Shown here: positions 5,467 to 29,577 of the stretch, piece after piece | How the letters are laid out: every line of letters begins with the position of its first letter | Numbering within the stretch: position 1 is the first letter of the stretch | Virus record (IMG/VR): IMGVR_UViG_3300013093_000017 | Coordinates: 124,001 to 188,000 of that record | Length of the DNA stretch: 64,000 bases | Strand: one strand, 5' to 3' | The notes under the pieces: generated by a model | The model's database searches: none | Seen by the model: only the letters and a program-made list of their open reading frames with translations | What the model was told of the DNA's origin: nothing | Translations under genes and position numbers: made by a program

Positions 5467-8139
5467 ATGTCGTATGTAGATTCCATCTGGGATCGTGACA
5501 ATGATATTGTCAAGGTCGTCGAACGAGATCCAATCAAGGGTCGTATATTCCAACAATTTCCAGCACGCTATGTGTTCTATTATCCAGACGGTCGAGGAAA
5601 ATACACATCAATCTTTGGGGAACCATTGACCAAGGTTGTTAGTAAGAGTTGGAAAGAAAATGTTAAAGAACAAAAGATTCATTCAAGTCACAAACTGTAC
5701 GAGAGCGATATCAATCCTGTATTCCGTTGTTTAGAAGAAAATTATCTAGGTAAAGATGCTCCAAAACTAAATGTAGCATTTTGGGATATTGAGGTGGACT
5801 TTGATCCAGAACGTGGCTATGCTAGTCCAGACGATGCGTTTATGCCAATTACTGCTATTGCAGTACACCTACAATGGTTAGACACTCTAGTGTGTTTAGC
5901 TGTACCTCCTAAAACATTAACTATGGCAGAAGCTCAGGAACAGGTTAAAGATTTTCCAAATACTATCCTATTCGAAACAGAATACGAAATGTTGGATACC
6001 TTCTTAAATTTAATTGAAGATGCAGATGTGTTAAGTGGATGGAACAGTGAAGGCTTTGATATGCCCTACACAGTTAATCGCATTATTAAAACTCTGAGCA
6101 AAGAAGATACTCGTAGATTATGTCTATTCGATCAACTGCCAAAAAAACGTGAATACGAAAAATATGGGAAACAGGCCGTTACTTATGATCTAGTTGGCCG
6201 TGTTCATTTAGATAGTTTAGAATTATATCGCAAGTACACTTACGAAGAACGTCACAGTTATTCGTTGGATGCTATTGCTGAATATGAACTAGGCGAACGC
6301 AAAACACAATACGAAGGCACACTTGATCAACTATACAACAATGACTTTAAAAAGTTTATTGAATATAACCGTCAAGATACTGCCTTGTTAGATCGCTTAG
6401 ATAAGAAATTAAAATTCTTAGACCTTGCTAACACACTAGCACATGATTGTACAGTATTGCTACAAACAACTATGGGTGCTGTGGCTGTTACAGAACAGGC
6501 TATTATTAACGAGGCACATCATTTAGGAATGATTGTTCCAAGTCGTCCTCGAAGAGATGATTCAGTTGACACGCAGGCCGCAGGTGCTTATGTAGCATAT
6601 CCAAAAAAAGGTATTCACGATTGGATTGGTTCAATGGATATTAACAGCTTATATCCAAGTGCAATTCGTGCCCTAAACATGGGTCCAGAAACTATTATTG
6701 GTCAATTACGTCAAGACTATACCAAAGCAGAAATCGAAGCCAAGATGGCTAAAAATGGCGGCAAGTTCGCTATGGCGTGGGAAGGTAAGTTTGGCGCAAA
6801 TGAATATGAGTTTGTTATGGCCAAAGATAAAACTAACGAAATCATTATTGATTGGGAAGATGGGCACACTGATGTAATGAGTGGTGCTCAGATCTATGAG
6901 CTAGTATTTGAAAGTAATCAACCTTGGATGCTATCAGCAAACGGAACTATCTTTACCTACGAGAAAGAAGGTATTATTCCGGGATTATTAAAACGCTGGT
7001 ATGCTGAACGTAAAGACATGCAGAAAAAACTAAAGGAAGCTATCGATGTTGGTAACAAAATTGAAGAAGAGTATTGGGATAAACGACAACTTGTTAAGAA
7101 AATTAATCTTAATAGTCTGTATGGGGCTATTCTTAACGCTGGTTGCCGCTTCTTTGATAACCGTATTGGACAATCCACCACCCTTACTGGGCGACGAATC
7201 GCTAGGCATATGGCCGCTAAGATAAATGAGATTATCACAGGCGATTACGACCATGTAGGTAAAAGCATTATCTACGGTGATACTGATAGTGCGTACTTTA
7301 GCGCATACTTAACTTTAAAGAATGAAATCAATAAAGGTCAACTTACTTGGAATAAAGATACTGTTATTGATCTATATAATACAGTAGCAGACGAAGTAAA
7401 TGGTACATTTCCTCAATTGATGCTAGATGATTTCCATTGTCCTAAATCCAGAGGCGAAGTAATTAAAGCAGGGCGTGAAATTGTTGCCATCAAAGGATTG
7501 TTTATTACCAAGAAGCGTTATGCTGTATTGTATTACGACAAAGACGGTAATCGTTATGACGTAGACGGCAAGGTTGGCAAGATCAAAGCTATGGGTTTAG
7601 ATTTGAAGCGCAGTGATACTCCGGAGTTTATGCAGAACTTTTTGAGCGATGTATTAACCAAGGTGTTAAATGGTGCTGAAGAATCAGAAATTCTTGAGAT
7701 GATATCAGAGTTCCGTACCAAGTTTAAAGTGCGTCCAGGCTGGGAAAAAGGTAGCCCAAAACGTGCTAACAACATTGCTGCCTATCAAGCCAAAGAAGAA
7801 AAGGCAGGTAAGAGTAATATGCCCGGACACGTTCGAGCTAGTATCAATTGGAATACTTTGAAGCGCATGAATGGTGACAAATATTCTATGAACATTGTAG
7901 ATGGTATGAAGGTTATCGTTTGCAAGATGAAAGACAATCCACTCGGATATACCTCAATCGCATATCCAGTAGATGAACTGCGTTTACCTAAATGGTTCCA
8001 AGAATTACCATTTGATCACGCAGAGATGGAAGCTACTATTATTAACAACAAACTAGATAATCTTATTGGAGTATTGGAGATTGACCTTGTGTCAACCCAA
8101 AACAACAATACATTTTCTTCGTTATTTGATTTTGAATAA
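5467..8139 (+). CDS. Family B DNA polymerase (T4 gp43-like)
   Basis: Exo motifs DIE, GWNSEGFD and YNRQD; polymerase motifs DINSLYPS, KINLNSLYG and YGDTDS. Confidence 0.97.
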   Translation: MSYVDSIWDRDNDIVKVVERDPIKGRIFQQFPARYVFYYPDGRGKYTSIFGEPLTKVVSKSWKENVKEQKIHSSHKLYESDINPVFRCLEENYLGKDAPKLNVAFWDIEVDFDPERGYASPDDAFMPITAIAVHLQWLDTLVCLAVPPKTLTMAEAQEQVKDFPNTILFETEYEMLDTFLNLIEDADVLSGWNSEGFDMPYTVNRIIKTLSKEDTRRLCLFDQLPKKREYEKYGKQAVTYDLVGRVHLDSLELYRKYTYEERHSYSLDAIAEYELGERKTQYEGTLDQLYNNDFKKFIEYNRQDTALLDRLDKKLKFLDLANTLAHDCTVLLQTTMGAVAVTEQAIINEAHHLGMIVPSRPRRDDSVDTQAAGAYVAYPKKGIHDWIGSMDINSLYPSAIRALNMGPETIIGQLRQDYTKAEIEAKMAKNGGKFAMAWEGKFGANEYEFVMAKDKTNEIIIDWEDGHTDVMSGAQIYELVFESNQPWMLSANGTIFTYEKEGIIPGLLKRWYAERKDMQKKLKEAIDVGNKIEEEYWDKRQLVKKINLNSLYGAILNAGCRFFDNRIGQSTTLTGRRIARHMAAKINEIITGDYDHVGKSIIYGDTDSAYFSAYLTLKNEINKGQLTWNKDTVIDLYNTVADEVNGTFPQLMLDDFHCPKSRGEVIKAGREIVAIKGLFITKKRYAVLYYDKDGNRYDVDGKVGKIKAMGLDLKRSDTPEFMQNFLSDVLTKVLNGAEESEILEMISEFRTKFKVRPGWEKGSPKRANNIAAYQAKEEKAGKSNMPGHVRASINWNTLKRMNGDKYSMNIVDGMKVIVCKMKDNPLGYTSIAYPVDELRLPKWFQELPFDHAEMEATIINNKLDNLIGVLEIDLVSTQNNNTFSSLFDFE

Positions 8140-8186: not shown

Positions 8187-9077
8187 ATGAACTACAAACT
8201 ACATTATGAATTATTGATTAAAAAAGCAAAGAATCGTATACTCGATCCGCTGATTAAAGTGGAATCTCATCATATTTTACCAAGATCAATGGGTGGCACC
8301 GATATGAACGAAAATCTAATAGCGTTGTTTCCGAGAGAACATTTAATTGCGCATTTATTGTTATGGAAAATTCATCAATCTAATGCAATGACTAATGCGG
8401 CGTGGCAAATGTCACATAGGAAAATTGGAGATGAATATATTAAAATTAACTCTCGTATATATGAAAAATTAAGAATAGCCTTTAGTGAAACACAAACCAA
8501 AAGAATGGCAGACCCTAAAGTAAGAGAACACTTAAAAAATATTAATTTAGGGCATCCCGTAAGTATCGAAAGCAGACAAAAAATATCTGCCGCACTTACA
8601 GGAAAGAAACAACCAAACGAGTTAGTAGAAAAAAGATCTATAGGTATTAGAAAATATATGTCAGAATCACGTAAAGGAAAAACCTGGGAAGAAATATACG
8701 GTAAAAAAGTTTCTAAAAAAATGAGAGAAGATATCAGTAATGCTAATAAAGGAAAAATACTCACCGATTCCCACAAAGAAAATATTAGCAAAGGAAATAC
8801 TGGTAAGCTGTTATCCGAAGAAACGAAAGAAAAAATATCAACATCTAACAAAGGAAAGGTTAGAACCGAGGAGGCAAAAAAACGAATATCAGAATCCCAT
8901 ATAGGAAAACTATTATCAGAGGAACATAAAACAAAAATAAGTGAATCAAATAAAGGAAAACCTAAATCAGAAGAGACTAAACAAAAAATGTCAGAATCTA
9001 AAAAAGGAAAAACGTTCACTGAAGACCATAAGAAAAAACTTAGTGAAGCAGCAAAACAAAGAAAAAAGAGATTTTGA
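8187..9077 (+). mobile_element. Free-standing HNH homing endonuclease with NUMOD3-like repeats
   Basis: [12 protein letters not shown]...[14 protein letters not shown]; repeated SEETKxKIS...KGK units; very A-rich; own CTAAATA at 8163-8169. Confidence 0.9.
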
Positions 9078-9141: not shown

Positions 9142-9879
9142 ATGAAAGAAATCTTACAAGACATCGTATCACATACACACAACCTAGGCTTTTTGAGTAC
9201 TGTAAAGATTACAGGCGAAGCTGATTCGACTAAAATTGACTCGATGGCAGATGACCGTACAGTTATTATGTACGCAGAAACTGCCACACCCTACGCAGAT
9301 ATGGTAGGTGTATTTGGTATGCCACAATTAGGCAAATTGAAATACCTATTAGATGGTGCTGAATACAAAGAAAATGCAAAAATTGAAGTGGTTACAGCAG
9401 ATCGTAATGGCGAAACTGTTCCAACAGGACTACATTTTGAAAACACAGATGGTAGCTTTAAGAATGATTATCGCTTTATGAACACAGAAATTATTAACGA
9501 AAAACTCAAGACTGTTAAATTCCGTGGTGCTAATTGGGATGTCGAAGTTAATCCTAGCCTACAGGCTATACAACGGTTTAGTTTCCAAGCAGGTGCTAAT
9601 AACGAGCATACAACATTCCTTGCTAAAACAGATGATCAAGGTAATTTAAAGTTTATCTTCGGTGACCAATCAACTCACGGTGGTGAATTTGTTTTTGCAA
9701 CAGGTGTAAAAGGCAAATTAACCAAAGGCTTTACTTGGCCAGTTAATGCTATCTTAAGTATTTTGAAAATTGCAGACGTAAACAACTGTACATTAAGTAT
9801 CAGTGACGCCGGAGCATTACAGATCACAATGGATAGTGGTATTGCTACTTACAAATACATTATTCCAGCACAAGCATAA
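9142..9879 (+). CDS. Probable DNA polymerase sliding clamp (gp45-like)
   Basis: 245 aa, alternating beta/alpha pattern ending YIIPAQ, downstream of the polymerase, whose C-terminus FSSLFDFE resembles a clamp-binding peptide. Confidence 0.6.
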   Translation: MKEILQDIVSHTHNLGFLSTVKITGEADSTKIDSMADDRTVIMYAETATPYADMVGVFGMPQLGKLKYLLDGAEYKENAKIEVVTADRNGETVPTGLHFENTDGSFKNDYRFMNTEIINEKLKTVKFRGANWDVEVNPSLQAIQRFSFQAGANNEHTTFLAKTDDQGNLKFIFGDQSTHGGEFVFATGVKGKLTKGFTWPVNAILSILKIADVNNCTLSISDAGALQITMDSGIATYKYIIPAQA

Positions 9880-10238
9880 TGATTAAGAATATCGTACAAG
9901 CAAGCTCATTCGTAACTGTCAGTAGTTATATGCCTCAGGTATATGGATCAGGCAATATGAGTGGGCAGATGCGATATAATACCAATTCACAATCTGTTGA
10001 AGTATATGACGGAAATAATTGGATTAGTATTAGTCAACAAGCATCAGTTGGATTGAGCTACGAAGCAGAAGAAGCAATGCGCTGGGCCATTAACAAAAAA
10101 CGCGAAGAAGCAGAGATTAAAGAACTAGCAGAGAAACATAAAGCTGTGGCTGCTGCATTAGAAAACCTAAATAAAGCACAAGAACAATTAAAGATAGTAG
10201 CACACTTATCGAAGGATACAGATGAAACAACAAGTTAA
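9879..10238 (+). CDS. Hypothetical protein
   Basis: GQMRYN...VEVYDGNNW motif plus coiled coil; translationally coupled. Confidence 0.6.
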   Translation: MIKNIVQASSFVTVSSYMPQVYGSGNMSGQMRYNTNSQSVEVYDGNNWISISQQASVGLSYEAEEAMRWAINKKREEAEIKELAEKHKAVAAALENLNKAQEQLKIVAHLSKDTDETTS

Positions 10239-11853
10239 CCTAACCCCATTACAGAAAGACTACGCAGTATATCTACCAGCGATTAGTTCATTCTATAGTA
10301 CCTATATCGCCAAACAACGATTAGAGAAATTTATTTCAGATGACCGTATTCCAGCAGGGTTTGATCGCGGTATTGAAGGTATGAATTTCTTAAATCCAGA
10401 AGAAGGATACTTTACCTACAAGTACGGTCTATATTCAGCAGGTCACGCACAGTTAGATTTGCAAAAATCAATTACACAAGAGTCAATGATTCAACAACGT
10501 GATCGTGCCAACACAATGATCTTAGGTGACTCAGGTGGTTACCAAATTGGTAAGGGCGTTCTTAAGTTTGATTGGTTAAATTTTGATGGTCCGGCTGCTA
10601 ACAAAACACGACAAAGCATCTTAGAGTGGTTAGAAATGACTGCTGATTGGTCAATGATGTTAGACGTTCCGACATGGGCATGTGATCGTATCCATAGTCC
10701 AAAGACAGGATTGAAATCTTTTGAAGACTGTTTAGAAAAAACTAGATTTAATAATGACTATTTCTTAAAAAATCGTTTAGGTCATACCAAATGGTTGAAT
10801 GTATTACAAGGTGGTGATTGGGATACTGCGGAGAAATGGTACAACGGTGTTAAAGAATATAGTGATCCAAATGGTCCTTATGCGGGCAGTGAAGCAGAAG
10901 GTTGGGCATTTGGTGGTGCTAATATGTGTAAGATGGACATCACACTTAAACGTCTAATGACTATGCGTGAAGATGGTCTACTAAAAGGTAAGAATTGGAT
11001 TCACTTCTTGGGTACAGCACAATTAGATTGGGCCTGTTACTTAACCAGCATCCAAAGACAAATAAGGAAACATATCAATGAAGAACTTACAATATCGTTT
11101 GATTGCGCATCACCATTCATTGCAACTGCGCACGGGCTTGTCTACACTAATGCACAACATACCCCAAAACGTTGGAGTGTCATTATGGACAAGGCGCCTG
11201 ATAATAAAGCACTTTCAGGTAGCGATATCCCTTTTCCGTTCGAAAGCGAGTTTGGAAGACGGTTAACCATGAAAGATATTGCCTACTATGACCTAGGTGT
11301 GCCAAAAACACAGGAAGAATTAGGCAAGGATGTTAAATTTAATCACTTAAATCCTGAACATTATACAGTAGTTCCAAAACTTAATAAGTTAGGTAAGATT
11401 CCTAACAAAACAAGTTGGGATAGTTTTGCCTATGCATTAATGATGGGACATAATGTTTACTGTCATATTGTTGCTGTACAACGTGCTAATCAATTAGCTG
11501 ACATCGAATCAACGAGATTTAAACCAGATTGGCGTCATTGGAAGAAATTAAACGCAAAAGATTCAGGTGGTGATCAGTTTAGTGATTGGGTTCCTCGTAA
11601 TATATTGTACTTCAATCAATTCATTAAAGAATTGTTTAACACCCAGACTAAAGAAGAAGCGTTTGAGATGATTCAACAGGCTCGTCCATTCTTAACAAGT
11701 TTAGAAGGTGCAAGGCTACAAGGTGGACCTGCTCAAAATACATTTACTAATTTATTTGATGTTGAAGAAATAACTACAGCAGAAGAAGTAGACTTAGAAA
11801 ATCCAGACGATGACGAACTACGTGCATTAGAACAAGGACTAAATGATGAATAG
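10222..11853 (+). CDS. Divergent TGT/DpdA-like transglycosylase (predicted DNA 7-deazaguanine insertion enzyme)
   Basis: TGT-fold motifs in order: GDSGGYQ, MMLDVP, VLQGG, WAFGG, IHFLG, SFDCAS and GHN; neighbours folE and queE. Confidence 0.75.
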   Translation: MKQQVNLTPLQKDYAVYLPAISSFYSTYIAKQRLEKFISDDRIPAGFDRGIEGMNFLNPEEGYFTYKYGLYSAGHAQLDLQKSITQESMIQQRDRANTMILGDSGGYQIGKGVLKFDWLNFDGPAANKTRQSILEWLEMTADWSMMLDVPTWACDRIHSPKTGLKSFEDCLEKTRFNNDYFLKNRLGHTKWLNVLQGGDWDTAEKWYNGVKEYSDPNGPYAGSEAEGWAFGGANMCKMDITLKRLMTMREDGLLKGKNWIHFLGTAQLDWACYLTSIQRQIRKHINEELTISFDCASPFIATAHGLVYTNAQHTPKRWSVIMDKAPDNKALSGSDIPFPFESEFGRRLTMKDIAYYDLGVPKTQEELGKDVKFNHLNPEHYTVVPKLNKLGKIPNKTSWDSFAYALMMGHNVYCHIVAVQRANQLADIESTRFKPDWRHWKKLNAKDSGGDQFSDWVPRNILYFNQFIKELFNTQTKEEAFEMIQQARPFLTSLEGARLQGGPAQNTFTNLFDVEEITTAEEVDLENPDDDELRALEQGLNDE

Positions 11854-12004
11854 ATTAAATGAATTAATTCAAAGACAAACTGAGTTAGAAGAACAAATTC
11901 GTACAGGTAAGAGTAAGTACTTAGATGATGCTAACTGCGGCAAAGCTGAACAAGAATTAATGATTGTTACTCGTTTAATAGAAGATATCAAAAATGCAGC
12001 GTGA
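11843..12004 (+). CDS. Small coiled-coil hypothetical protein (53 aa, not in ORF track)
   Basis: AAGGA RBS, then MMNRLNELIQRQTELEEQIRTG...IKNAA*; fills the gap between its neighbours. Confidence 0.55.
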   Translation: MMNRLNELIQRQTELEEQIRTGKSKYLDDANCGKAEQELMIVTRLIEDIKNAA

Positions 12005-12539
12005 TTATAATACAGGTGTAGCAGATTCAGTAATATTCTTTATCGGTGACGAGATTGAACAAACTCCTGCATACGGATTACGAACATTATTTGTTGTAGG
12101 TGTTCACGAGTCCAATGACATTCTAAAATTATTAAACACAAAACTTGCCCACAGCAACATTCAACATATCTATTTTGGGGCTAATCAGAGCTTTCCTAAT
12201 CCGGACATAAACAATGCGATTGTTTGGAAAGAATGGGAAGATATGATTATCGCCTGTCTAGAAGCAGGTTATTGGTGTACTCTAGATTTAGATGTACGCT
12301 GTGCTGAAGGATTAGTAGAAGGTCCATTGGTAGAAAATCGTAGATTTATTCCACAGTTAAGTGTAAAGATTCCATACTTGACACAGTTGGGATATAATGC
12401 TACAATTAAATTAGACGACAAAGGATTTGAGGCAAGTAATCCCGGCGTCTGGTGTCATACATTACATTCATTAACTACTAGAGATTCATTCACAAGTTGG
12501 GATGAATACGGTAAAGACGAGATAATTAAACGTGATTAA
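11994..12539 (+). CDS. Uncharacterised protein in the DNA-modification cluster
   Basis: 181-aa ORF overlapping both neighbours, with enzyme-like motifs (HIYFGANQSF, IKLDD, NPGVWCH). Confidence 0.65.
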   Translation: MQRDYNTGVADSVIFFIGDEIEQTPAYGLRTLFVVGVHESNDILKLLNTKLAHSNIQHIYFGANQSFPNPDINNAIVWKEWEDMIIACLEAGYWCTLDLDVRCAEGLVEGPLVENRRFIPQLSVKIPYLTQLGYNATIKLDDKGFEASNPGVWCHTLHSLTTRDSFTSWDEYGKDEIIKRD

Positions 12540-12921
12540 TAAACGAATTTGGGTAACCTTTCAAAAAGAAGGCATTCATTGCTATCCTGCGGCAGCAACT
12601 GACCCTAACCTTAATACTGGAGATGCATATGATGTATCGTTTCTTGCTAGTCCTCACCGCCACATTTTTCATTTCAGGGTGTCAATCAGTGTGTTCCATA
12701 ACGACAGGGACATCGAATTCATCCAGTTCAAACGGTGGCTTGAAACCATGTATGTGGGTAGCGGTGCCACTTTAGAACTAAATTATAAGAGCTGTGAGAT
12801 GATCGCAGATGATCTTTACAAAGAGATCGCTCAAAAGTATCCTAATCGTGATGTTTGGATAGAAGTATCCGAAGATGGCGAGAATGGGTGTTATCATGAG
12901 TACATTAGTACTCGTTCGTAA
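12532..12921 (+). CDS. QueD/PTPS-like T-fold protein with LxxxHRHxF motif (DpdL-like candidate)
   Basis: EGIH...LASPHRHIF...SCEMIA...VSED; the canonical QueD CxxxHGH motif is replaced. Confidence 0.7.
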   Translation: MINKRIWVTFQKEGIHCYPAAATDPNLNTGDAYDVSFLASPHRHIFHFRVSISVFHNDRDIEFIQFKRWLETMYVGSGATLELNYKSCEMIADDLYKEIAQKYPNRDVWIEVSEDGENGCYHEYISTRS

Positions 12922-12947: not shown

Positions 12948-13187
12948 GTGGCTAATCCAAAATGGCTAAACAAATATCTAACAATAAAGCCAGAAGTACA
13001 TAAGATCTATGATGATCTTGATGCGTGGTTAAACTATTGCAGGTTTAACTTAACCAAGTTTGATCCAGCGGATCTATACAAGTCACCAGCTTGTAAAGAA
13101 TGGCTAGAAAAACGCCGTCGTCGTCAGCAATGGCAACAACGTAATGGTCAGACCAGCAATGGTTATCAAGGTAAGAATCCACGCTAG
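12948..13187 (+). CDS. Hypothetical protein
   Basis: AAGGAG RBS and GTG start. Confidence 0.6.
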   Translation: MANPKWLNKYLTIKPEVHKIYDDLDAWLNYCRFNLTKFDPADLYKSPACKEWLEKRRRRQQWQQRNGQTSNGYQGKNPR

Positions 13188-14011
13188 GAACTGTGAGTAT
13201 ATTGTTCCATTAGTTGAGATAGGGTAATATGGCATTTAGTATTTTTGATAGAATTATCTAAATGCCACAACATACGCAGATTTGTCCAATGCCCTATAAC
13301 CTCAGGAGAGATTCCTTGTTTGAATCCTTCCTCTACAGAAAATATATGATCTAAATGGTATTTGTATCTTGCTCGTGGTAAGTTACTAGGGTTGATTTTA
13401 TAATAATGGGTATGGTAAGATTTAGCAGTAATCTTCTTTACAGCAAGTCTATAAAGTTCTAATTCGCTACGATGCTCGTCACTTACCCAATCACCTGTAG
13501 AAATACGAGATTTTCTAATTTTAGCAGTTACATCTTTTGATTTAGAAGGATTATCTACTCCGTATTTTTCTATACAGGTTTCCTTGTGTTTGTTTTTTAC
13601 CTGTTCAGATTTGAATGGGTTGTCTACTCCATATTTTTCTATACAGGTATTTTTTACTGTATTCCTAAATTCAGTAGATTGAGAGGCAAACTCTGTTCCG
13701 TATTTTGCCAAACAAGCGGCTTTGTATTTTTTCAAGAATGCTGGATTACGATTCCTGCAAGAAGAAGAGCAGTTTTGGGTATACCCGCTCCGGAGTCCGG
13801 TAAATCTTAAAGGGTTAACACGGCATACTGGACATAATATCGGAATGACAGATCCTTCTAAATATAATTCGTGAAATGCTTTTTGAAACAACGGCCATTC
13901 TGAAGGATATTCTGTTAAACAAGTTCCAATATAGTTCTTGATTATAGGTCGTAAATCTGTTATTTTATTTGGATAAGTTTCTATTAACTTTTTTATTTCA
14001 TTTTTAGTCAT
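13184..14011 (-). mobile_element. Free-standing HNH-type endonuclease with KYGxxN repeats
   Basis: CPVC...CSSSC; three KYG(V/T)xx repeats; YHLDHIFS...NLRML...N HNH-like core; antisense to the operon; TATAAATA on the - strand at 14046-14053. Confidence 0.75.
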
Positions 14012-14077: not shown

Positions 14078-15184
14078 ATGAAACCTACAATTTGGATTTT
14101 CTCGCTTGAGCCAATTGAAACCAGATATACAGCACAATGGCATAAACATATTCCAAAACTACTCAAGAACAACTTAGGAGATAAGTTTAATATAGTTCAG
14201 GTTGATGGTATCCAGAAAGACAGCCAACTTACTCCGGGTGCTTTCTTAAACTTTTCAGATACTAACTATTGGAAAAGTTCGCAATTATGTAATTTTTTAG
14301 AGCATCATAATAGAGGAGAAACTTCCACCGACGATCACATCCTTTTTACCGACGCTTGGAATCCTACGGTTATCCAACTCAAATATATGAAGGATCTGTT
14401 AGGCTTTAACTGGACCTTACACGGTATGTTCCACGCGGGGTCATATGATCCTCAGGACTTCTTGGGTAGATTAATTGGTCCTGCGGCTTGGGTTAGAAAT
14501 GCTGAGAAGAGCTTCTTTGCAGCCATCGATCACAACTACTTTGCAACTAGATTCCATATAGATATGTTTGTTGACAATCTACTAGAAAATGGAGTACCGC
14601 GTGAGAATCCGTGGGCTGATGAAGATAAAGCAAGTTTGCTTATGAACTATAAGATTGTACGTAGTGGTTGGCCTATGGAATATATGGAACATACCTTAGA
14701 TATCTATAAAGGTATGCCCAAGCGCGATCTTATCTTATTTCCTCATCGTATCGCTCCTGAGAAACAGGTTGAGATATTTAGAGATCTAGCACAGGCATTA
14801 CCGCAGTTCGAATGGGTTATTTGTCAAGAACAACAATTAACAAAGAACGAATATCACAATCTATTAGGTGAAGCTAAGATGGTGTTTAGTGCTAACCTAC
14901 AAGAAACATTGGGCATTAGTATGTACGAAGGTGCATTACTAGATGCTATCCCAATGGTTCCAGACAGATTGAGCTACAGTGAAATGTTTGCTAATGTTTG
15001 GAAATACCCAAGTGAGTGGACAGAATCATGGGACAGCTATCTTACCCATAGAAAAGAACTATGTGAGCTGATCGTTGATTATATGGAAAATTATAACGAG
15101 TATGTTAAATTTATTAAGCAACAGGCATATAGTTTAACCAAAGAGTTTTTCAATGCTGGACAATTATTAGAGAGATTAAAATGA
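14078..15184 (+). CDS. GT-B fold glycosyltransferase (GT4-like)
   Basis: FPHRIAPEK and the ETLGISMYEG (E-x7-E) signature. Confidence 0.8.
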   Translation: MKPTIWIFSLEPIETRYTAQWHKHIPKLLKNNLGDKFNIVQVDGIQKDSQLTPGAFLNFSDTNYWKSSQLCNFLEHHNRGETSTDDHILFTDAWNPTVIQLKYMKDLLGFNWTLHGMFHAGSYDPQDFLGRLIGPAAWVRNAEKSFFAAIDHNYFATRFHIDMFVDNLLENGVPRENPWADEDKASLLMNYKIVRSGWPMEYMEHTLDIYKGMPKRDLILFPHRIAPEKQVEIFRDLAQALPQFEWVICQEQQLTKNEYHNLLGEAKMVFSANLQETLGISMYEGALLDAIPMVPDRLSYSEMFANVWKYPSEWTESWDSYLTHRKELCELIVDYMENYNEYVKFIKQQAYSLTKEFFNAGQLLERLK

Positions 15185-15951
15185 AGATTGGAATTATCGG
15201 ATTAGGATTCGTAGGTGGTGCTGTTAAGGCAGCGCACGATTTAGTAGGTATTGAAACAGTTGATGTAGATCCTCATAAGGGATTGCCAGCAACATTAGCT
15301 GATGCTAAAGCGTGTGATGCTATCTACATCTGCGTGCCTAGCCCTATTGGATCAGATGGTGCTTGCGATACCAGCATCTTAGAAAACGTTATGGAACAGC
15401 TAACAGATTACACTGGCCCTATCATTAGTAAGGTCACTGCGCCACCTAGCGTATATGTTCGCTTACAAGAAAGTCATAAGAATCTTATTCATGCTCCAGA
15501 ATTCTTAGTTGCGGCAACTGCTAACGAAGATTACATCAACGGTACTTATGCCATTATCGGTGGATATGAACCTTATGCTACTCAGGCAGAAGCGGCTATC
15601 TTGGCAGCGCAACGCCGAGTAACTAACATTACTAAGATCGGAATAGGCGAGGCAGCATTAACAAAATATGCTATCAATACATTCTTATCTACAAAAGTTA
15701 TCTTTATGAATGAGCTAAAGGCACTTGCTGACGCTGCTGGAATTGATTACAATGTAGTTAAAGATACTATTCAGTTTGATTCACGTCAGGGTAATAGTCA
15801 TTTTGATGTACCTGGTCCAGATGGTAAGTTTGGATTCGGTGGTGCTTGCTTTCCAAAAGATACTTCGGCATTATTAAAATACGCTGAAGGATTAGGAGTT
15901 GAGTTAAGTGTATTAGCAAGTGCTGTGGCGAAAAATAAAATCATTCGTTAG
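15181..15951 (+). CDS. ugd: UDP-glucose/GDP-mannose 6-dehydrogenase, short form lacking the C-terminal domain
   Basis: GIIGLGFVG, ICVPSP, PEFL, KYAINTF and GFGGACFPKD. Confidence 0.9.
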   Translation: MKIGIIGLGFVGGAVKAAHDLVGIETVDVDPHKGLPATLADAKACDAIYICVPSPIGSDGACDTSILENVMEQLTDYTGPIISKVTAPPSVYVRLQESHKNLIHAPEFLVAATANEDYINGTYAIIGGYEPYATQAEAAILAAQRRVTNITKIGIGEAALTKYAINTFLSTKVIFMNELKALADAAGIDYNVVKDTIQFDSRQGNSHFDVPGPDGKFGFGGACFPKDTSALLKYAEGLGVELSVLASAVAKNKIIR

Positions 15952-16024: not shown

Positions 16025-16723
16025 ATGGTAGCAAAATACACACCAGTTAGCGAAACTATTCGCAACAACTTAAAGAAAGACAACAAACGTTTCTGGGCTG
16101 GAGATAACATCTCAGAATACATCACAGAAGAAAACAAAGCCCTATTAATTGACGAAGCAACTCTAGCATTTGAAGGTGTGCTTGATACATTGTTAATTGA
16201 TCGTGAAAACGATCCTAACAGTCATGGTACAGCTAGACGTTTAGCCAAAATGTACTTTAATGAGATCATGGCCGGACGTTATGAACCTAATCCAGATGCT
16301 ACAGCATTTCCAAATGACAGCGAAGATCGTTATGAAGGTATGCTAGTAGTTCGCAGTGAACTACGCAGTATGTGTAGTCATCATCACCAACCGGTGGCGG
16401 GGGTTGCGTATATTGGGATTATTGCCGCTCAAAAGCTCATTGGTTTGTCTAAGTACACTCGTATTGCTCAGTGGTGTTCTCGTCGTGGTACTCTACAAGA
16501 AGAACTATGTAATGACATTGCTAGAGAGATTATGAAAGCAACAGGTAGTGAGGATGTAGCAGTTTATATAGAAGCCGAACACGGATGTTGCGTTAATAGA
16601 GGCATAATGGCACATTCGAGCTTAACCCAAACAACTGTATTACATGGTGCGTTTAAGAATGACTCAAGTACCAAAAAAGAGTTCTTTGATAATATCAAAC
16701 TACAAGCAAGAAACGGCAAGTAA
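16025..16723 (+). CDS. folE: GTP cyclohydrolase I
   Basis: SMCSHH, GLSK, LQE, AEHGC and RG motifs. Confidence 0.95.
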   Translation: MVAKYTPVSETIRNNLKKDNKRFWAGDNISEYITEENKALLIDEATLAFEGVLDTLLIDRENDPNSHGTARRLAKMYFNEIMAGRYEPNPDATAFPNDSEDRYEGMLVVRSELRSMCSHHHQPVAGVAYIGIIAAQKLIGLSKYTRIAQWCSRRGTLQEELCNDIAREIMKATGSEDVAVYIEAEHGCCVNRGIMAHSSLTQTTVLHGAFKNDSSTKKEFFDNIKLQARNGK

Positions 16724-17368
16724 ACTAAATCCATTCTCTCTCCAAGTTTTAGAGGAATCGATATTTAGGTGATCAATTTTCTTGCTTGCCCTACCATTGG
16801 TCACAGGGTAAGCATCTAAATTATTATAGATAGTGTTTAATGTCCATTCGGGGATATTTAGAACTTTGTGTATTTCTTTCTTAGTTTTGAATATGCCGAC
16901 TGGAGTAATGAATTTGTCTTTCAAAACACGAGGCGGGATGAAGTCTTTGGCAGCTCTATTTGCTTTCCAAGAGTTTAATCGTTTTTCCTGTATTGTAGGA
17001 TTTTTCATAGGATTATTAATGAGCATACGCAGACGAACTTGCTCAATAAGTTTGGGGGTAGAAAAAATGTTTTCTTTTCCTCGTCGATATCTAGGGCCAT
17101 TAAACGCACTTGATTTATTGAAGAAGCCATAAGCGTGACGCATTTTAATTTCATCTTGGAAATTATCCTGCATTTTGATTAGAAGGCAATGACACACTCG
17201 ATGTTCTTTATAGGTTAAATCTACTAAATTAGTAGGATCGTTTGTTCCACCTAACGATTTAGGAATGATATGATGGCATTGATTAAATTTAGAAGATTTT
17301 GTTCTATTTTCATTTAATGCTCTTGTAATTATTCTATAATATGTTATACTATATTTGTTAGTAATCAT
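16700..17368 (-). mobile_element. Free-standing HNH homing endonuclease
   Basis: CHHIIPKSLGGTNDPTNLVDLTYKEHRVCH; GAGG RBS before ATG 17368; GATAAATA on the - strand at 17395-17402; overlaps the folE 3' end. Confidence 0.88.
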
Positions 17369-17429
17369 AATACGCCTCATAAATTCTATATTATTATTTA
17401 TCTGGTTGTTGCGAAAATAGAGGTATTAA

Positions 17430-18530: not shown

Positions 18531-18868
18531 GTCAAATATTTCTCCCCGCTGGTGCATCTGCTAACAAGTCTGGTAATAATACCGTGATTGGTGGCGCTAT
18601 TAACAATATTACCATAGCAAATGGTGGTACAGGATATGGGGCTGGAAGCAACACTACATTTAGCGGTGCTGGTACAGCTGGTACAGTAGGACCGACAGGA
18701 ACTTTTGGATGGTCTTATACCGATCAACAGCACGAGTGGATGTTAGAATATAAACTCGATCCTATTAAAATGGGCCTGATGTGTGAAAAATTTCCAGCAC
18801 TAGCTAAGAGTTGGAGTCAGTTTAAAATGTTGTATAATCTATGTAAATCGGAAGAAGAGAATGGATAA
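18527..18868 (+). CDS. Hypothetical protein with Gly/Thr-rich N-terminal half
   Basis: Coupled ORF; MCEKFPALAKSW C-terminus. Confidence 0.55.
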   Translation: MSQIFLPAGASANKSGNNTVIGGAINNITIANGGTGYGAGSNTTFSGAGTAGTVGPTGTFGWSYTDQQHEWMLEYKLDPIKMGLMCEKFPALAKSWSQFKMLYNLCKSEEENG

Positions 18869-19382
18869 GAGACGAATCAGTTTTGAAGAATATCGAGGAT
18901 ATGTTGGCGCTATCTGCCGAGATATCACTATTAGCGATTGGATGCCTGATTATGTAGTAGGTGTTACTCGCGGCGGATTACTGGCTGCTACAATGATCAG
19001 TCATTACTTTAAGATCCCAATGCATACATTAAAAGTAGCCTTACGTGATCACGCAGACACAGAAAGCAATCTTTGGATGGCAGAGGATGCATACGGATAC
19101 AACGGCGAGGTAGGTGATCAAGTTGCTAAAAACATTTTGATTGTAGATGATATTAACGACACTGGCGAAACACTAAACTGGATTATGAAAGATTGGCAAA
19201 CTAGTTGCTTACCCAGCGATGCTCGATGGAATCATGTTTGGAATCAAAATGTAAAGTTTGCTACAATTGTAGATAACTTAGATAGTGATTGCAAGGTTAA
19301 GATGGACTATGTTGGTTTTGAAATTAATAAAGCAGAGGAAGATGTTTGGATTGATTTTCCTTATGAATCTTGGTGGGAATAA
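18861..19382 (+). CDS. Purine phosphoribosyltransferase (Gpt/Hpt-like)
   Basis: VGVTRGGL, the PRPP loop ILIVDDINDTGET, and WIDFPYE. Confidence 0.88.
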   Translation: MDKRRISFEEYRGYVGAICRDITISDWMPDYVVGVTRGGLLAATMISHYFKIPMHTLKVALRDHADTESNLWMAEDAYGYNGEVGDQVAKNILIVDDINDTGETLNWIMKDWQTSCLPSDARWNHVWNQNVKFATIVDNLDSDCKVKMDYVGFEINKAEEDVWIDFPYESWWE

Positions 19383-20116: not shown

Positions 20117-20286
20117 TCCTTAGCAACTATGCCCACGAAAATAGAACAGCAAATGTTTGCAAACAGAGCGGAGAGTATGTTATAATGTGTTATGAAGATG
20201 GGCATTACATACGTTCAGAAATAGCATTAAGTGAAACATCAGCTGATGATATTGCAGAAGATTGGGTATTTAAAAGTGATAACTAA
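20113..20286 (+). CDS. Small hypothetical protein (57 aa, not in ORF track)
   Basis: ATGA overlap; MILSNYAHENR...ADDIAEDWVFKSDN*. Confidence 0.55.
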   Translation: MILSNYAHENRTANVCKQSGEYVIMCYEDGHYIRSEIALSETSADDIAEDWVFKSDN

Positions 20287-20548
20287 CAAAACACAAGAAG
20301 CATTGATTATTCTGCAGGAAGAATGTGCTGAAGTAATACAGGCAGCTAGTAAAATATATCGATTTGGGCTAGATAATTCTCACAAATCAGGCCTTACCCA
20401 ACGAGCTAATTTAGAAATGGAAATTGGCGATATGCTGTCCCTGGTAGATATTTTAGTTGAGCAAGGTGTTCTAGACCTAAATAATTTAAACACTGCTAAA
20501 TTAAACAAAATTGAAAAACTTAAAATATGGTCAAAATTATATGAGTAA
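20276..20548 (+). CDS. MazG-like NTP pyrophosphohydrolase
   Basis: LQEECAEVIQA...LEMEIGD (EExxE...ExGD); probable GTG start at 20276. Confidence 0.75.
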   Translation: MITNKTQEALIILQEECAEVIQAASKIYRFGLDNSHKSGLTQRANLEMEIGDMLSLVDILVEQGVLDLNNLNTAKLNKIEKLKIWSKLYE

Positions 20549-21383
20549 AATTAAAGTAGCAGAGCTGTTTTACAGCATACAGGGCGAAGGTCGCTATATG
20601 GGAGTACCTAGCGTGTTCCTTAGAACTTTTGGCTGCAATTTTTCTTGTAGGGGCTTCGGTATGGGTAAAGGGCAATTGAGTGAAGAATACTTAACTGTTA
20701 ATCCAGAACTATACACAAAATATGATGAACTTCCACTAGTTAGTACAGGGTGCGATAGTTATGCTAGTTGGGATCCACGCTTTAAGCATTTAAGTCCAAT
20801 GTTAGAGTCAGATGCTATTGCAGAAGCAATTGCAGATATGTTGCCTTATAAAGATTGGAATGACGAACATTTAGTTATCACAGGCGGCGAGCCTTTGCTA
20901 GGATGGCAACGTGCTTATCCAGATCTATTAGATCATCCCAAAATGAAGAATCTAAAAGAGATCACATTTGAAACAAATGGTACTCAAGAATTATCACCAG
21001 AACTTAGAACATATCTACTCAATTGGCAAAGTGAAAACTTTGATAGAGAAGTAACTTTTAGTGTAAGTGCTAAATTAAGTGCAAGTGGTGAACATCCAGA
21101 CGAAGCAATTAAACCTGAGATTGTGTGTTCGTATGAAGAAGCAGGTTATACATATCTTAAGTTTGTTATTGCAACAGAAGAAGATGCAGAAGAAGCATTA
21201 GAAGCCGCAGATATCTATCAACAAAATGGGTTTACTGGTCCAATTTATCTAATGCCAGTCGGCGGGGTTGAAAGCGTTTATGCATTAAACAACCGTCGTG
21301 TAGCAGAATTAGCAATGAAACACGGCTTGCGATATAGTGATAGGCTGCAAGTTCCGTTATTTAAAAATGAATGGGGTACATAA
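20541..21383 (+). CDS. queE: 7-carboxy-7-deazaguanine synthase (radical SAM)
   Basis: ELFYSIQGEG, FLRTFGCNFSC...GCDS (CxxxC with a long insertion before the third Cys), ITGGEP, ETNG and RLQ. Confidence 0.9.
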   Translation: MSKIKVAELFYSIQGEGRYMGVPSVFLRTFGCNFSCRGFGMGKGQLSEEYLTVNPELYTKYDELPLVSTGCDSYASWDPRFKHLSPMLESDAIAEAIADMLPYKDWNDEHLVITGGEPLLGWQRAYPDLLDHPKMKNLKEITFETNGTQELSPELRTYLLNWQSENFDREVTFSVSAKLSASGEHPDEAIKPEIVCSYEEAGYTYLKFVIATEEDAEEALEAADIYQQNGFTGPIYLMPVGGVESVYALNNRRVAELAMKHGLRYSDRLQVPLFKNEWGT

Positions 21384-22478
21384 TTGAGTTATCTATTTAC
21401 ATCAGAATCTGTTAGTGAAGGACATCCGGATAAAGTAGCAGATGCTATTAGTGATGCTATTTTAGACCTAGTTATGGTACACGAAGATCCAAGTATGCGG
21501 GTTGCTTGCGAAACTTTAGTTACTACTAATCGTGTTGTACTTGCAGGAGAGTATAAAAATGTTGCCCTACACAATGCGCAGATCGATAGTGCTGTAAGAA
21601 AAGTTATCAAAAATATTGGCTACGAACAAGAAGGATTTGATTGGCGTACAGTTGAGATCACTAACTTATTACATGCACAAAGCGCAGACATTGCACTCGG
21701 TACTGATAACTTCGGAGCAGGCGATCAAGGACTGATGTTTGGGCACGCTACTAAAGAAACTCCGAACTATATGCCTGCGGCGATTTATTACAGCCATAAG
21801 ATTATGGAATATTTGACAACAATGCGTAAAGGTGGGCAAACTTGGTTAGGTCCAGATGCTAAAGCACAGGTAACATTAAATTACATTGGTAATAAAGCTC
21901 GTTATGCTACTAAGATTGTATGTTCAACTCAGCATAGTCAAGGTGTAGAAGTTGAAGAGCTACGTCCTGTAATTGAAACTTATATTAGAGAGTGTGTTCC
22001 GGAGATTATCACAGATGCTACCGAATTTCTTATCAATCCTACTGGTCGTTTTGTCATTGGTGGGCCCGACGGTGATACTGGCCTCACCGGACGAAAAATT
22101 ATCGTGGATACCTACGGTGGCAGTTGTCCTCATGGTGGCGGTGCTTTTAGCGGCAAAGATCCTACAAAAGTTGATCGTAGTGCCGCTTATATGGCTAGGT
22201 ACTTGGCTAAGAACATTGTAGCCAGCGGTCGCGCAAATGTAGCAACTGTTCAATTAAGCTATGCTATTGGTGTTGCTGATCCAATGAGTGTGTACATTGA
22301 CTGCGATGGAAATTGCGAAGGCATTAGAGATTGGATAATTAAACATGTTGATCTAACTCCAAAGGGTATTATAGATAGATTTAATATGTTTCGTCCTATC
22401 TATAGTCAAACTACTAACTACGGACACTTTGGCAAAGATTTTTTGCCTTGGGAAGCTGTAGATTTATTTAAGGTGTAA
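21384..22478 (+). CDS. metK: S-adenosylmethionine synthetase
   Basis: FTSESVSEGHPDK, GAGDQG and GGGAFSGKD; TTG start directly after the queE stop. Confidence 0.97.
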   Translation: MSYLFTSESVSEGHPDKVADAISDAILDLVMVHEDPSMRVACETLVTTNRVVLAGEYKNVALHNAQIDSAVRKVIKNIGYEQEGFDWRTVEITNLLHAQSADIALGTDNFGAGDQGLMFGHATKETPNYMPAAIYYSHKIMEYLTTMRKGGQTWLGPDAKAQVTLNYIGNKARYATKIVCSTQHSQGVEVEELRPVIETYIRECVPEIITDATEFLINPTGRFVIGGPDGDTGLTGRKIIVDTYGGSCPHGGGAFSGKDPTKVDRSAAYMARYLAKNIVASGRANVATVQLSYAIGVADPMSVYIDCDGNCEGIRDWIIKHVDLTPKGIIDRFNMFRPIYSQTTNYGHFGKDFLPWEAVDLFKV

Positions 22479-22479
22479 T

Positions 22480-22968
22480 ATGAATATTATTCAAACATTA
22501 TTTGAAAAAGTTACGGGCATTGATAAGATACGTGCTAAAGCGGCTGCAGAAGCAGAAGCGGCTATTCAATTAGCCCTAGAAGCACAAGCTGAGGCAAAAG
22601 CATCTTCATTAGCAGCAGAAGAAGCAAAGGCAGAAGAAGTCGCAGCAAAAGAAGCAGAGCGTATTGCTAAATTAACGCCAAAAGAACTTGCTACAGAAAA
22701 GAAAGAGCCTTACATTGCAGTATTAGATACCAAAGTAAATCCAGAGAATCCTCGTAATGGATTTTTTGAGCTTGATTGGAATGAATATTTTATCATGCAA
22801 TTGAAAGAAGCAGGCTATTATGGTGAAACAGATGAAGAACTAGCAGATCGTTGGTTCCAAGATTTGTGTCGCAATATTGGTGCAGAATCAGGTGTAGATA
22901 TGGATCGTAGAGGTGCAGGATACATTAATGTAAATGATTTAGGTAATGGTAAGTCAGAGATTAGTTAA
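22480..22968 (+). CDS. Hypothetical phage protein
   Basis: Ala/Glu-rich N-terminal half; NGFFELDWNEYF core. Confidence 0.65.
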   Translation: MNIIQTLFEKVTGIDKIRAKAAAEAEAAIQLALEAQAEAKASSLAAEEAKAEEVAAKEAERIAKLTPKELATEKKEPYIAVLDTKVNPENPRNGFFELDWNEYFIMQLKEAGYYGETDEELADRWFQDLCRNIGAESGVDMDRRGAGYINVNDLGNGKSEIS

Positions 22969-23627
22969 TGTCAAGATTAACAGAGTGGCTCTACGGTATT
23001 CAACAACTAGGTTTACAAATTGATACAGTATATGATATTGGTGCCTGCGTAGGCAACTGGAGCCGCGAGATACAAGATAAAGTTTGCCCCAATGCAGACT
23101 TTATCCTGTTTGAAGCTAACCCTGCATATAATGAAATTTTATCTAATAGCAAATTCCGCTATTTCAATACAGTCCTAAGCAATCCCGGTAGAGAGTTTGT
23201 CGAATTCTACAATGGAACAAACACCGGCGATAGTTACTATAAAGAAAATACCACAACATACGACAATCAAACAACTGTTAGATTGCTCTGCTCCACACTT
23301 GATGCTATAATAAATGAATACAACCTGCCAATTCCTAATCTTATTAAACTTGATACACAAGGTTCTGAATTAGATATTTTAGCAGGGGCTGAATCTATTG
23401 TAGATAAAGTAGATTTAATGTATGTAGAATGTCCAATTATAAACTATAATATTGGAGCACCTAGCATACAAGATTATTTAGATTACTTTAAGAACAAAGA
23501 GTTTGTGCCAGTTGATTTACTTGAAACGCATCAAAACGAGAATATACTATTACAAGTTGATATTATGTTTATGAAAAGAGAAACCAAAGAAAGGATCTTA
23601 ACTCCAACCCGTCAGGTAAGGATTTAA
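22968..23627 (+). CDS. FkbM-family SAM-dependent methyltransferase
   Basis: VYDIGACVG, FEANP and IKLDTQGSEL. Confidence 0.88.
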   Translation: MSRLTEWLYGIQQLGLQIDTVYDIGACVGNWSREIQDKVCPNADFILFEANPAYNEILSNSKFRYFNTVLSNPGREFVEFYNGTNTGDSYYKENTTTYDNQTTVRLLCSTLDAIINEYNLPIPNLIKLDTQGSELDILAGAESIVDKVDLMYVECPIINYNIGAPSIQDYLDYFKNKEFVPVDLLETHQNENILLQVDIMFMKRETKERILTPTRQVRI

Positions 23628-28553: not shown

Positions 28554-29142
28554 TTCCTAAACTGAAATCTTCATACAATTGTTCTTTGGACTTGTGAGAA
28601 GTTTTGCTTTTAGCATAGTTTTCTGTACAATGTACAAGACGAAGGTTAGTAATATCCGAGACAATATTAGCAGGTATAGAGTTTCGAAATCCGTCTGCTA
28701 CACTATAGATATGATCAATATGCCATTCTCTACCTCGTAATCCTTGCGGATCTAACATACCTTTATGTCGATTGTACATTGTATCGGCATATTGATGACA
28801 CCGATCTATATACTGTTTTAGAGTTAATCCCTCAACAGAATAATCTTTGTGGTTATGATATTCATTCCAGTATTCTTTTTTGTTAGCTTTGATTTTAGCA
28901 CGGGCTTCGGGTATATGAGCAGCATTAGATACTCCGTAACGTTCTTCCATAACTTGTTGACGTTTTTCTTTAATAGTAGGACTAGAACTAGCATTAGGTA
29001 CCCCATATCGTTTAATAGAAGTTGCTTGCATCTTAGCCTGAACCGCCGGGCATCGTGCAGGAATTTTAGAGCATTTATGTTTTCCATTCCAGGTAATATA
29101 AGTAGCTTCTTGGCCGCAGTTATTTTCGCATAGTATTTTCAT
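28516..29142 (-). mobile_element. Free-standing HNH-type endonuclease with RYGVxN repeats (same family as 13184-14011)
   Basis: WHIDHIYSVADGF...NLRLVHCTENYAK; antisense and overlapping the vWA 3' end; TATAAATA on the - strand at 29148-29155. Confidence 0.75.
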
Positions 29143-29217
29143 AAATGTATTTATATAAAGTAGCCGTCAGTAAACAAAATATAGTATCAACTAATTAATT
29201 CATCACTTCATAAATGG

Positions 29218-29265: not shown

Positions 29266-29278
29266 AAGTAGGTATTTA

Positions 29279-29560: not shown

Positions 29561-29577
29561 TTAGGAGAACCAGAAAA

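Follow-up and report, generated by a model that had tools for sequence, protein, structure and literature searches.

A DpdA-type transglycosylase, probably tethered to a phage sliding clamp by a polymerase-like tail

Why would an enzyme with the fold of a base-exchanging transglycosylase carry, in its disordered tail, a close copy of the peptide that ends the DNA polymerase of the same virus? The question arises from a 64,000-nucleotide stretch of viral DNA (hereafter the window), corresponding to bases 124001-188000 of the 229,675-bp IMG/VR contig IMGVR_UViG_3300013093_000017, whose estimated completeness is 65%. Here an open reading frame (ORF) of 543 amino acids, hereafter the transglycosylase, follows the genes of a family B DNA polymerase and of a sliding clamp. 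The answer that we favour, at a probability of about 0.68, is that it is a DpdA-type DNA transglycosylase tethered to the PCNA-like clamp of the phage via a polymerase-mimicking tail that resembles a PCNA-interacting protein (PIP) box, and that it modifies newly replicated DNA.

Fold, kinship and zinc site of the transglycosylase

The transglycosylase found no match in Pfam, in PHROGs, in a phmmer search against the PDB or in a search of the PDB with its family profile, and megablast against phage records found nothing. The profile of the tRNA-guanine transglycosylase (TGT) family, PF01702, gave no significant match either, identity to TGTs being about 14%. Sequence searches being blind to the protein, its fold had to come from structure prediction. 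An AlphaFold2 model, based like the family alignment on 106 representatives (homologues clustered at 50% identity), is confident (pLDDT 90.4, pTM 0.91) and forms a (beta/alpha)8 barrel with TGT-specific insertions that can be superposed on solved TGTs. All 50 matches listed by Foldseek against the PDB are tRNA-guanine or archaeosine transglycosylases (E 1e-6 to 2e-5). The catalytic domain covers approximately residues 8-495 and is followed by a disordered tail (496-530) and a terminal helix (531-542).

A first-pass annotation of the DNA had claimed the TGT fold, which model and structural matches bear out, and had named a set of catalytic-type motifs, every one of which is found in the ORF: DSGGYQ (103-108), LD (147-148), QGG (196-198), HFLG (261-264), FD (293-294, followed by C295) and HN (410-411). 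P150, H261, G264 and D294 do not vary among the representatives, at least 90% of which also keep D103, S104, G105, G106, Q108, D148, N193, G197 and N411. Judged by motif identity and order, D103 would correspond to TGT Asp102, and D294-C295 to Asp280-Cys281; PDB titles among the Foldseek matches name the TGT mutants D102N and C281S.

The family is large, with more than 7,000 proteins at E 0.001 in a word-indexed search and 883 clusters at 50% identity, and the contigs that bear relatives reach up to 356 kb. Profile alignment with hhalign links it to the DpdA2 of Vibrio phage nt-1 (94.2% probability, E 1e-7, 177 columns) and to the DpdA of Acidovorax phage ACP17 (96.5%, E 1e-9), to which the transglycosylase is 21% identical by blastp. 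The nt-1 DpdA2 (YP_008125322; PMC6884629) and the long forms of ACP17 and BUCT-ZZ01 have in common with it a TGT-derived barrel and the motifs DSGG.Q, QG, H.LG and IS.D. FolE, QueD and QueE lie near these DpdA2 types, as does DpdL in ACP17 and BUCT-ZZ01. In contrast, identity is approximately 20% across some 180 aligned columns only, and the window enzyme is longer, with an extra N-terminal segment and an insertion at 325-400. Its kinship to experimentally supported DpdA holds at the superfamily level, with the transglycosylase outside any named subfamily.

The DpdA3 of phage phiST (gp042; PMC10516641) resembles the window system in its DpdL partner, in a FolE/QueD/QueE cluster without QueC and in adjoining a replicative polymerase gene. 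However, that polymerase is of Pol III alpha type whereas the one in the window belongs to family B, and the phiST enzyme has DNGAGD in place of DSGGxQ and no polymerase-like tail. We considered an assignment to DpdA3 but did not adopt it, as the hhalign match is partial (76% probability, E 2e-5, 83 columns only), the lengths are 259 and 543 amino acids, the DSGG motif differs and so does the architecture.

The first-pass annotation had also singled out the absence of the three-cysteine zinc site. The six cysteines of the transglycosylase (154, 170, 236, 272, 295 and 414) indeed form no CxCxxC, but this is not special to the gene: the motif occurs in 0 of the 106 representatives, and it is missing too from the DpdA2 of nt-1, ACP17, pf16 and BUCT-ZZ01 and from the DpdA3 of phiST. 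At position 354 of the window enzyme, an Ala, 61 of the 106 representatives have a Cys. Bacterial DpdA (bDpdA) has a structural site, CXCX2CX22H with its His on the terminal barrel helix, that is presented as a conserved feature of DpdA proteins (PMC10164549); Z. mobilis TGT and S. Montevideo DpdA have it, whereas the window family retains the His only. Motif and position lead us to equate H410 with this His, a zinc ligand in TGT and bDpdA; its three Cys partners are absent. We therefore rejected zinc-site loss as a distinguishing novelty; it is real but ordinary among phage enzymes. Nor is it an argument against activity, since the DNA of nt-1 contains dPreQ0 (PMC6884629) though its DpdA2 has no zinc motif. 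Read from its residues, the transglycosylase barrel seems to lack the structural zinc, with the Asp/Asp catalytic set complete.

A polymerase-like peptide and the sliding clamp

The C-terminal peptides of T4/RB69 gp43, gp55 and gp33 bind the gp45 clamp. By analogy, the tail of the window polymerase presumably binds the clamp encoded downstream of it; polymerases of related loci have [LMIF]F within their last 8 residues in 58 of 58 unique tails. The clamp ORF has no Pfam match by sequence, and its predicted structure matches yeast, human, archaeal and African swine fever virus PCNA (Foldseek, E 1e-10, TM 0.60-0.70, with 0.66-0.70 for the top matches) as a two-domain fold over the full length. 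Its language-model (atlas) neighbours are PCNA and gp45 clusters, and a clamp ORF is found in 135 of 139 related loci. A 314-aa clamp-loader ORF, DNA_pol3_delta2/RFC-like (E 2e-13, above the cut-off), lies at approximately 113.6 kb of the contig. The computational checks suggested in the first-pass annotation, which had drawn the parallel with the T4 gp45 clamp, all supported it, with a correction here: the ORF at 9142-9879 does have a sliding clamp fold, but its best structural matches are PCNAs and not gp45, and the tail motif reads as PIP-like.

The peptide in question, QNTFTNLFDVE, had been likened to the polymerase tail NNTFSSLFDFE. When the last 11 residues of the polymerase were scanned with BLOSUM62 against the 86,700 residues of all contig frames of at least 80 amino acids, the best non-self match was the transglycosylase site, with a score of 39 against 28 for the next best. 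For 300 shuffled peptides the best contig-wide score was 28.0 +/- 2.6 on average and 37 at most, and the likeness is thus beyond chance. Within it, Q505-N-T-F508-T-N-L511-F512 conforms to the PIP pattern Q-x-x-h-x-x-a-a, Leu taking the place of the first aromatic residue; conservation of F512 is 90% or higher. DNMT1 and UNG2 use PCNA, and the PIP-box clients also include archaeal FEN-1 and polymerase B. With these and with the gp45 peptides the window peptide shares the short Q-x-x-h-x-x-a-a-like form and the setting in a disordered tail; it differs from the PIP-box clients in that its pair is L-F and that the motif copies the cognate viral polymerase. Model confidence in the tail is low, pLDDT being <50 at 500-511 as well as 518-528, and residues 507-511 make one turn of helix, a picture that, as modelled, is the usual look of a short linear motif.

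The motif is kept across the phage clade although the tails are mutually unalignable. In its strict form (aromatic-x-x-[LMIF]-F, or [LMI]F within the last 8 residues) it is found in 44 of the 106 representatives, against 11.3 +/- 2.9 and at most 20 for shuffled tails (500 shuffles), and several further representatives have relaxed forms. Of the 96 unique homologues from phage loci, the strict form is found in 68 and [LMIV]F within the final 48 residues in 90; conservative variants occupy the equivalent place in the remaining 6. The motif persists down to approximately 33% identity, its position varying from internal to extreme C-terminal, and conservation of NTFxxLF is one of the checks that the first-pass annotation had proposed. 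Within single genomes, the tails of polymerase and transglycosylase may even be identical over nine residues (Table 1).

Table 1. Tails of the polymerase and of the transglycosylase or DpdA in the same genome
Genome or locus	Polymerase	Transglycosylase or DpdA
L003	NTFGSLFSF	NTFGSLFSF (identical 9-mer)
L019	FNKLFDF	FNKLFDF
PA5oct	HFDSLFGW-stop	SFNSLFDVD
L085 (38% identity to window enzyme)	TFFEF-stop	SLFEF-stop
L093 group	NTFNKLFEF-stop	NNFSSLFEGG-stop
ACP17 (T4-like, DpdA2-type)	SLDDLFE-stop	TLDELFE-stop
BUCT-ZZ01 (Synechococcus phage, T4-like, DpdA2-type)	TLDDFFS-stop	SLDSFFD-stop
pf16 (T4-like, DpdA2-type)	SLEDFFS-stop	TLDLMCA-stop (degenerate)
nt-1 (T4-like, DpdA2-type)	TLESFFG-stop	none recognisable

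The same relationship recurs in another DpdA lineage (Table 1). In ACP17 and BUCT-ZZ01 the DpdA tail is of the T4 type SLDxLF and stands at the extreme end, whereas the window enzyme has a PIP-like motif in the interior of an acidic tail. A 447-aa hypothetical protein encoded upstream of the BUCT-ZZ01 DpdA (L146:165-1508) ends in SLEDFFND-stop, and in view of this end at least two enzymes of the modification cluster may be clamp clients. The nt-1 enzyme, with no recognisable tail, comes from a phage in which just 0.02-0.11% of G is modified (PMC6884629).

Homologues in bacterial islands have no adjacent polymerase or clamp, and have either no such tail or a different one (W.TDDLEEF). Their neighbours are OGG-domain and TIR genes (P0243), QueD/QueE/QueC (P0200) or an integrase (P0176). 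Given the recurrence in ACP17 and BUCT-ZZ01 and the absence from bacterial islands, the polymerase-like tail tracks phage genomes with their own clamp and arose in at least two DpdA lineages. The islands (L161:7070-13135 of GCA_943370095.1; L160:7689-11389) may themselves be undescribed deazaguanine DNA-modification or defence systems. One of them holds QueD, QueE, QueC and two unknown genes beside a resolvase, an integrase and an NB-ARC gene, and the W.TDDLEEF C-terminal motif of the homologue from the QueD/QueE/QueC island is common to P0195, P0202, P0224 and P0240.

Docking on the clamp, as first proposed for this peptide, was also modelled. A complex prediction with three clamp copies and transglycosylase residues 496-530 gave an ipSAE of 0.47 (three runs: 0.46, 0.47 and 0.52) against 0.01 for the best control, a verdict of 'weak support', and replacing the clamp by an unrelated chain gave 0.00. 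In benchmarking, 58 of 80 solved complexes passed the ipSAE mark, as did 2 of 110 mismatched pairs; passes at 0.60 or below comprised only 7 of the 80 solved complexes, plus both passing mismatches. The predicted peptide contacts (506-508 and 510-515) are exactly the motif, and those on the clamp (39, 42, 123-130 in the interdomain loop, 197, 223-225, 240 and 242-243) are the canonical PIP pocket.

Beyond the motif, the tail has a second element, an acidic run and helix (Table 2). Its NPDDD.L..L positions are invariant in close relatives; the helix reads DDDELRALE, with the PA5oct counterparts NDEKLTELEQGLDN and NDEKLTELEQGL. A search of the contig for other clamp clients gave only a 739-aa T5orf172-like ORF (28038-30257, +) ending in IDNLFI-stop, a weak candidate. 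A 161-aa protein at contig 34395-34880 (+) ends in an SSB-like acidic tip, EEEFDDDDLY-stop.

The 7-deazaguanine module and the substrate

The first-pass annotation had favoured DNA over tRNA as the substrate, and the gene context speaks for this (Table 2). LASPHRHIF in the DpdL-type ORF fits the DpdL signature LxxxHRHxF (in place of CxxxHGH), by which sequence it is assigned here; DpdL is the proposed 7-carboxy-7-deazaguanine decarboxylase of phages with 2'-deoxy-7-deazaguanosine (dDG) in their DNA (PMC10516641). By tblastn the ORF is 33% identical to the phiST DpdL region (2e-8), 58% to that of ACP17 and 55% to that of PA5oct. QueD proper lies at contig 95888-96412, and QueC was not found in the 229-kb contig (estimated 65% complete); FolE, QueD, QueE and DpdL without QueC is the pattern of dDG phages, as far as an incomplete contig goes.

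Table 2. Features of the window (window coordinates)
Feature	Position	Strand	Remarks
Family B DNA polymerase	5467..8139	+	Pfam DNA_pol_B 1e-36, exonuclease domain 1e-18
Polymerase C-terminal tail NNTFSSLFDFE-stop, presumed clamp-binding peptide	8104..8136	+	
PCNA-fold sliding clamp subunit, 245 aa	9142..9879	+	AlphaFold2 pLDDT 90.7, from an alignment without PA5oct
Small ORF, 119 aa, between clamp and transglycosylase	9879..10238	+	PHROG matches weak, of unknown function
DpdA-type TGT-fold enzyme, most likely DNA 7-deazaguanine transglycosylase	10222..11853	+	543 aa, open frame
DSGGYQ motif	10528..10545	+	D103 equated with Z. mobilis TGT Asp102
SFDC segment	11095..11106	+	invariant D294, presumed nucleophile
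HN (H410-N411), last barrel helix	11449..11454	+	H410 in 91/106, N411 in at least 90% of representatives
Candidate clamp-binding peptide, PIP-like, QNTFTNLFDVE (Q505-E515)	11734..11766	+	disordered linker
Second tail element, acidic run and helix DDDELRALEQGL (residues 531-542)	11812..11847	+	helix in model
181-aa protein, no family	11994..12539	+	blastp E 4e-12 to 132-aa ORF just upstream of ACP17 DpdA
DpdL-type QueD paralogue, proposed 7-carboxy-7-deazaguanine decarboxylase	12532..12921	+	LASPHRHIF
GT-B (GT1/GT4-like) glycosyltransferase, 368 aa	14078..15184	+	atlas scores 0.97-1.00 to Glycos_transf_1 clusters
UDP-glucose/GDP-mannose dehydrogenase-like gene	15181..15951	+	directly after glycosyltransferase
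FolE, the GTP cyclohydrolase I that begins 7-deazaguanine synthesis	16025..16723	+	Pfam PF01227, 1.3e-40
Radical-SAM QueE-like, 7-carboxy-7-deazaguanine synthase candidate	20511..21383	+	Pfam Radical_SAM, Fer4_12 at 3.5e-4, below curated cut-off

The nearest cultured relatives are the PA5oct group of Pseudomonas jumbo phages; Sinorhizobium phage Phosso and Vibrio phage 2.275.O come next. PA5oct EST35_0316 (Wroclawvirus, Arenbergviridae), the closest cultured homologue found, is 43.5% identical over the full length and is annotated merely as a hypothetical protein, with no tail or clamp link described. Its gene order is that of the window (polymerase, clamp, small ORF, TGT-like gene, a 353-aa protein/glycosyltransferase, DpdL, and QueE further on), although the PA5oct polymerase, unlike that of the window, is interrupted by a homing endonuclease. 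The deazaguanine synthesis and incorporation system of PA5oct was already noticed by Iyer et al. 2021, and PA5oct DNA is resistant to restriction enzymes with G in their sites (PMC12191111). A PA5oct gene at a similar position to the QueE-like gene is annotated as 7-carboxy-7-deazaguanine synthase, the likeness being by position; so too, ORFs resembling the small ORF in size and place only are found in PA5oct (87 aa) and in the more distant L085 (89 aa). The PA5oct clamp homologue, EST35_0314 (L002:7912-8658), is annotated as a 'structural protein' from virion mass spectrometry, a surprising label if it is a sliding clamp.

Other genes are conserved in the module. The glycosyltransferase stands beside DpdA and DpdL in PA5oct (EST35_0317, 43.5% identity, 4e-91) and in ACP17 (a 342-aa ORF, 36.7%, 8e-71; both blastp), and together with the dehydrogenase-like gene it hints at a sugar-transfer step, perhaps a further hypermodification. 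The 181-aa protein, which has no Pfam match, looks from its ACP17 relative like a further conserved, uncharacterised member. The same gene array includes a phosphoribosyltransferase (18861-19382, +), a MazG-like pyrophosphohydrolase (20231-20548, +), an S-adenosylmethionine synthetase (21384-22478, +) and an FkbM-type methyltransferase (22968-23627, +); a phosphoribosyltransferase gene also follows the transglycosylase homologue P0229. Homing-endonuclease-like genes are dotted through the replication and modification module, at 8187-9077 (+), 13184-14011 (-) and 16700-17380 (-) (HNH+NUMOD3, DUF7487 and HNH). Further along the window, positions 39958-52770 (-) form one ORF of 4,270 amino acids, flanked by minus-strand ORFs of 580-1,140 amino acids, which are presumably virion or tail proteins.

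The contig also encodes tRNAs (24 and one odd call, at 72039-85499, outside the window). Among them are Tyr-GTA, His-GTG and Asp-GTC, whose GUN anticodons make them classic substrates of queuosine-type TGTs. A tRNA role would thus not want for substrate, and the preference for DNA holds with this qualification: DpdL, FolE, the QueE-like gene, QueD and the restriction resistance of PA5oct argue for it, and the GUN tRNAs against.

Competing explanations and significance

In the mechanism that we consider most likely, the transglycosylase would swap guanine in phage DNA for a 7-deazaguanine base from the neighbouring pathway. FolE, QueD, QueE and then DpdL would supply the base, the product probably being 7-deazaguanine itself, giving dDG. 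The clamp, whose gene lies two genes upstream, would take up the PIP-like Q505-F512 peptide in the hydrophobic pocket beneath its interdomain connecting loop. The transglycosylase would then be held on clamps loaded on new DNA, and modification would be processive, during or just behind replication. Of this picture the analysis shows the fold, the motifs and their conservation, the gene context, the likeness to the polymerase tail and its recurrence in a second DpdA lineage, whereas clamp binding, DNA as substrate, the base and the timing are inferred.

A number of observations weigh against this interpretation. In phiST 100% of the base is replaced (PMC10516641) by a DpdA3 without a polymerase-like tail, and a clamp tether is therefore not needed for complete modification in general. 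The complex score is of the 'weak support' kind, and might reflect the model's memory of PCNA-PIP complexes. The motif ends 28 residues short of the transglycosylase C-terminus, whereas the polymerase peptide is at the extreme end, and it has Leu where the canonical PIP box has its first aromatic residue. Co-variation of LF and FF is not strict, since L074 and L042 have LF in the polymerase but FF in the transglycosylase. Tail similarity within the same genome exceeds that of permuted pairs only modestly (12.7 against 11.1 +/- 0.59, reached by 20 of 5000 permutations), in a test that is confounded by phylogeny, whose picker sometimes took a structured-helix FVEELF site, and which is not our main evidence. 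To these are added the phage-encoded GUN-anticodon tRNAs. Finally, the phosphoribosyltransferase and the MazG-like enzyme could feed a modified base into the nucleotide pool or deplete it of dGTP, a route that would be alternative or additional to base exchange.

The peptide shared by polymerase and transglycosylase might bind another replisome partner (e.g. SSB, the clamp loader or the helicase-primase), which would co-recruit both enzymes. Room for this is left by the second conserved, acidic-helix element of the tail, by the level that the complex prediction reaches, and by the fact that clamp binding of the polymerase tail is presumed here by analogy with T4/RB69 gp43 and PCNA clients. However, the motif fits the PIP pattern, the prediction brings exactly residues 506-515 into contact with the clamp, at its interdomain loop and C-terminal residues, and collapses with the unrelated chain, the clamp gene is adjacent in nearly all loci, and both tails of the T4-like ACP17 are of the classical gp45-binding type; we regard another partner as unlikely. 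We are a little more sceptical of a peptide without any docking role, whether an intramolecular or dimerisation element or a compositional accident kept by descent. TGTs are dimers according to the literature, a composition-based estimate gives approximately 1.5 expected occurrences of F..LF[DE] in the contig, where 2 are found, and the motif-covariation statistic is confounded by shared ancestry. Against this, the full 11-mer match exceeds all 300 shuffled controls, and the motif survives in unalignable disordered tails despite its shifting position. It has, moreover, a separate origin in DpdA2 types, where it takes after the polymerase of the same phage (LF in ACP17, FF in BUCT-ZZ01), and it is absent from bacterial homologues with no phage polymerase or clamp nearby.

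The two other explanations concern the reaction itself. A tRNA-guanine transglycosylase acting on the phage GUN-anticodon tRNAs or on host tRNAs, with a tail irrelevant to substrate choice, would accord with the fold, which is that of tRNA TGTs, and with the tRNA genes of the contig. It is nevertheless very improbable in light of the absent Pfam TGT match and the low identity to TGTs, the DNA-modifying phage DpdA2 as nearest relatives by profile, the linkage to DpdL as proposed source of the 7-deazaguanine found in DNA (PMC10516641), the refractory DNA of PA5oct, and the position of the gene amid clamp and deazaguanine synthesis genes in an operon-like array with the polymerase. Least credible of all is a catalytically dead protein, left by zinc-site loss as a clamp- or DNA-binding accessory only. 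In its favour, TGT and bDpdA conserve the zinc site, and the window enzyme has neither CxCxxC nor the Cys at position 354 that part of its family conserves. But the conservation of DSGG in at least 90% of the representatives and the invariance of H261, G264 and D294 point to purifying selection on the active site, and phages with zinc-less DpdA2 or DpdA3 are still modified (dPreQ0 in nt-1; fully in DpdA3 phages).

The enzyme class and the deazaguanine system of PA5oct were already known; what is undescribed is the proposed clamp tether, which would probably couple the enzyme to replication. Full-text searches turned up no paper that connects a sliding clamp, PCNA or a PIP box with DpdA or with the insertion of deazaguanine, nor, in the literature searched, any report of a base-exchanging transglycosylase as a clamp client. 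Hutinet et al. 2023 (PMC10516641) concluded that deazaguanine insertion is post-replicative, with nothing more on its timing.

A broader proposition, which we advance tentatively and would not yet expect to hold, is that clamp tethering is a general strategy, evolved repeatedly, for genome-wide replacement of G by phage DpdA. The tail would then co-evolve with the polymerase peptide, its presence (the window/PA5oct clade, ACP17 and BUCT-ZZ01) or absence (nt-1 and bacterial islands) would predict high or trace modification, and further enzymes in the module, the 447-aa protein of BUCT-ZZ01 among them, would also be clients in a replication-coupled 'modification replisome'.

Base exchange requires single guanines to be flipped and replaced in duplex DNA, and the modified share spans <0.1% to 100%. 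A clamp-binding tail, if true, would recruit the enzyme to clamps on nascent DNA and let it slide with them, and would offer a handle on modification density, as a viral counterpart of DNMT1-PCNA and UNG2-PCNA. The family includes PA5oct, a jumbo phage that is a therapeutic candidate, in which the gene is annotated as hypothetical and which provides a cultured system for the prediction. Should the tether be real, the tail would also be a sequence marker for heavily modified phage genomes, of use in sequencing, in restriction and CRISPR evasion and in phage engineering.

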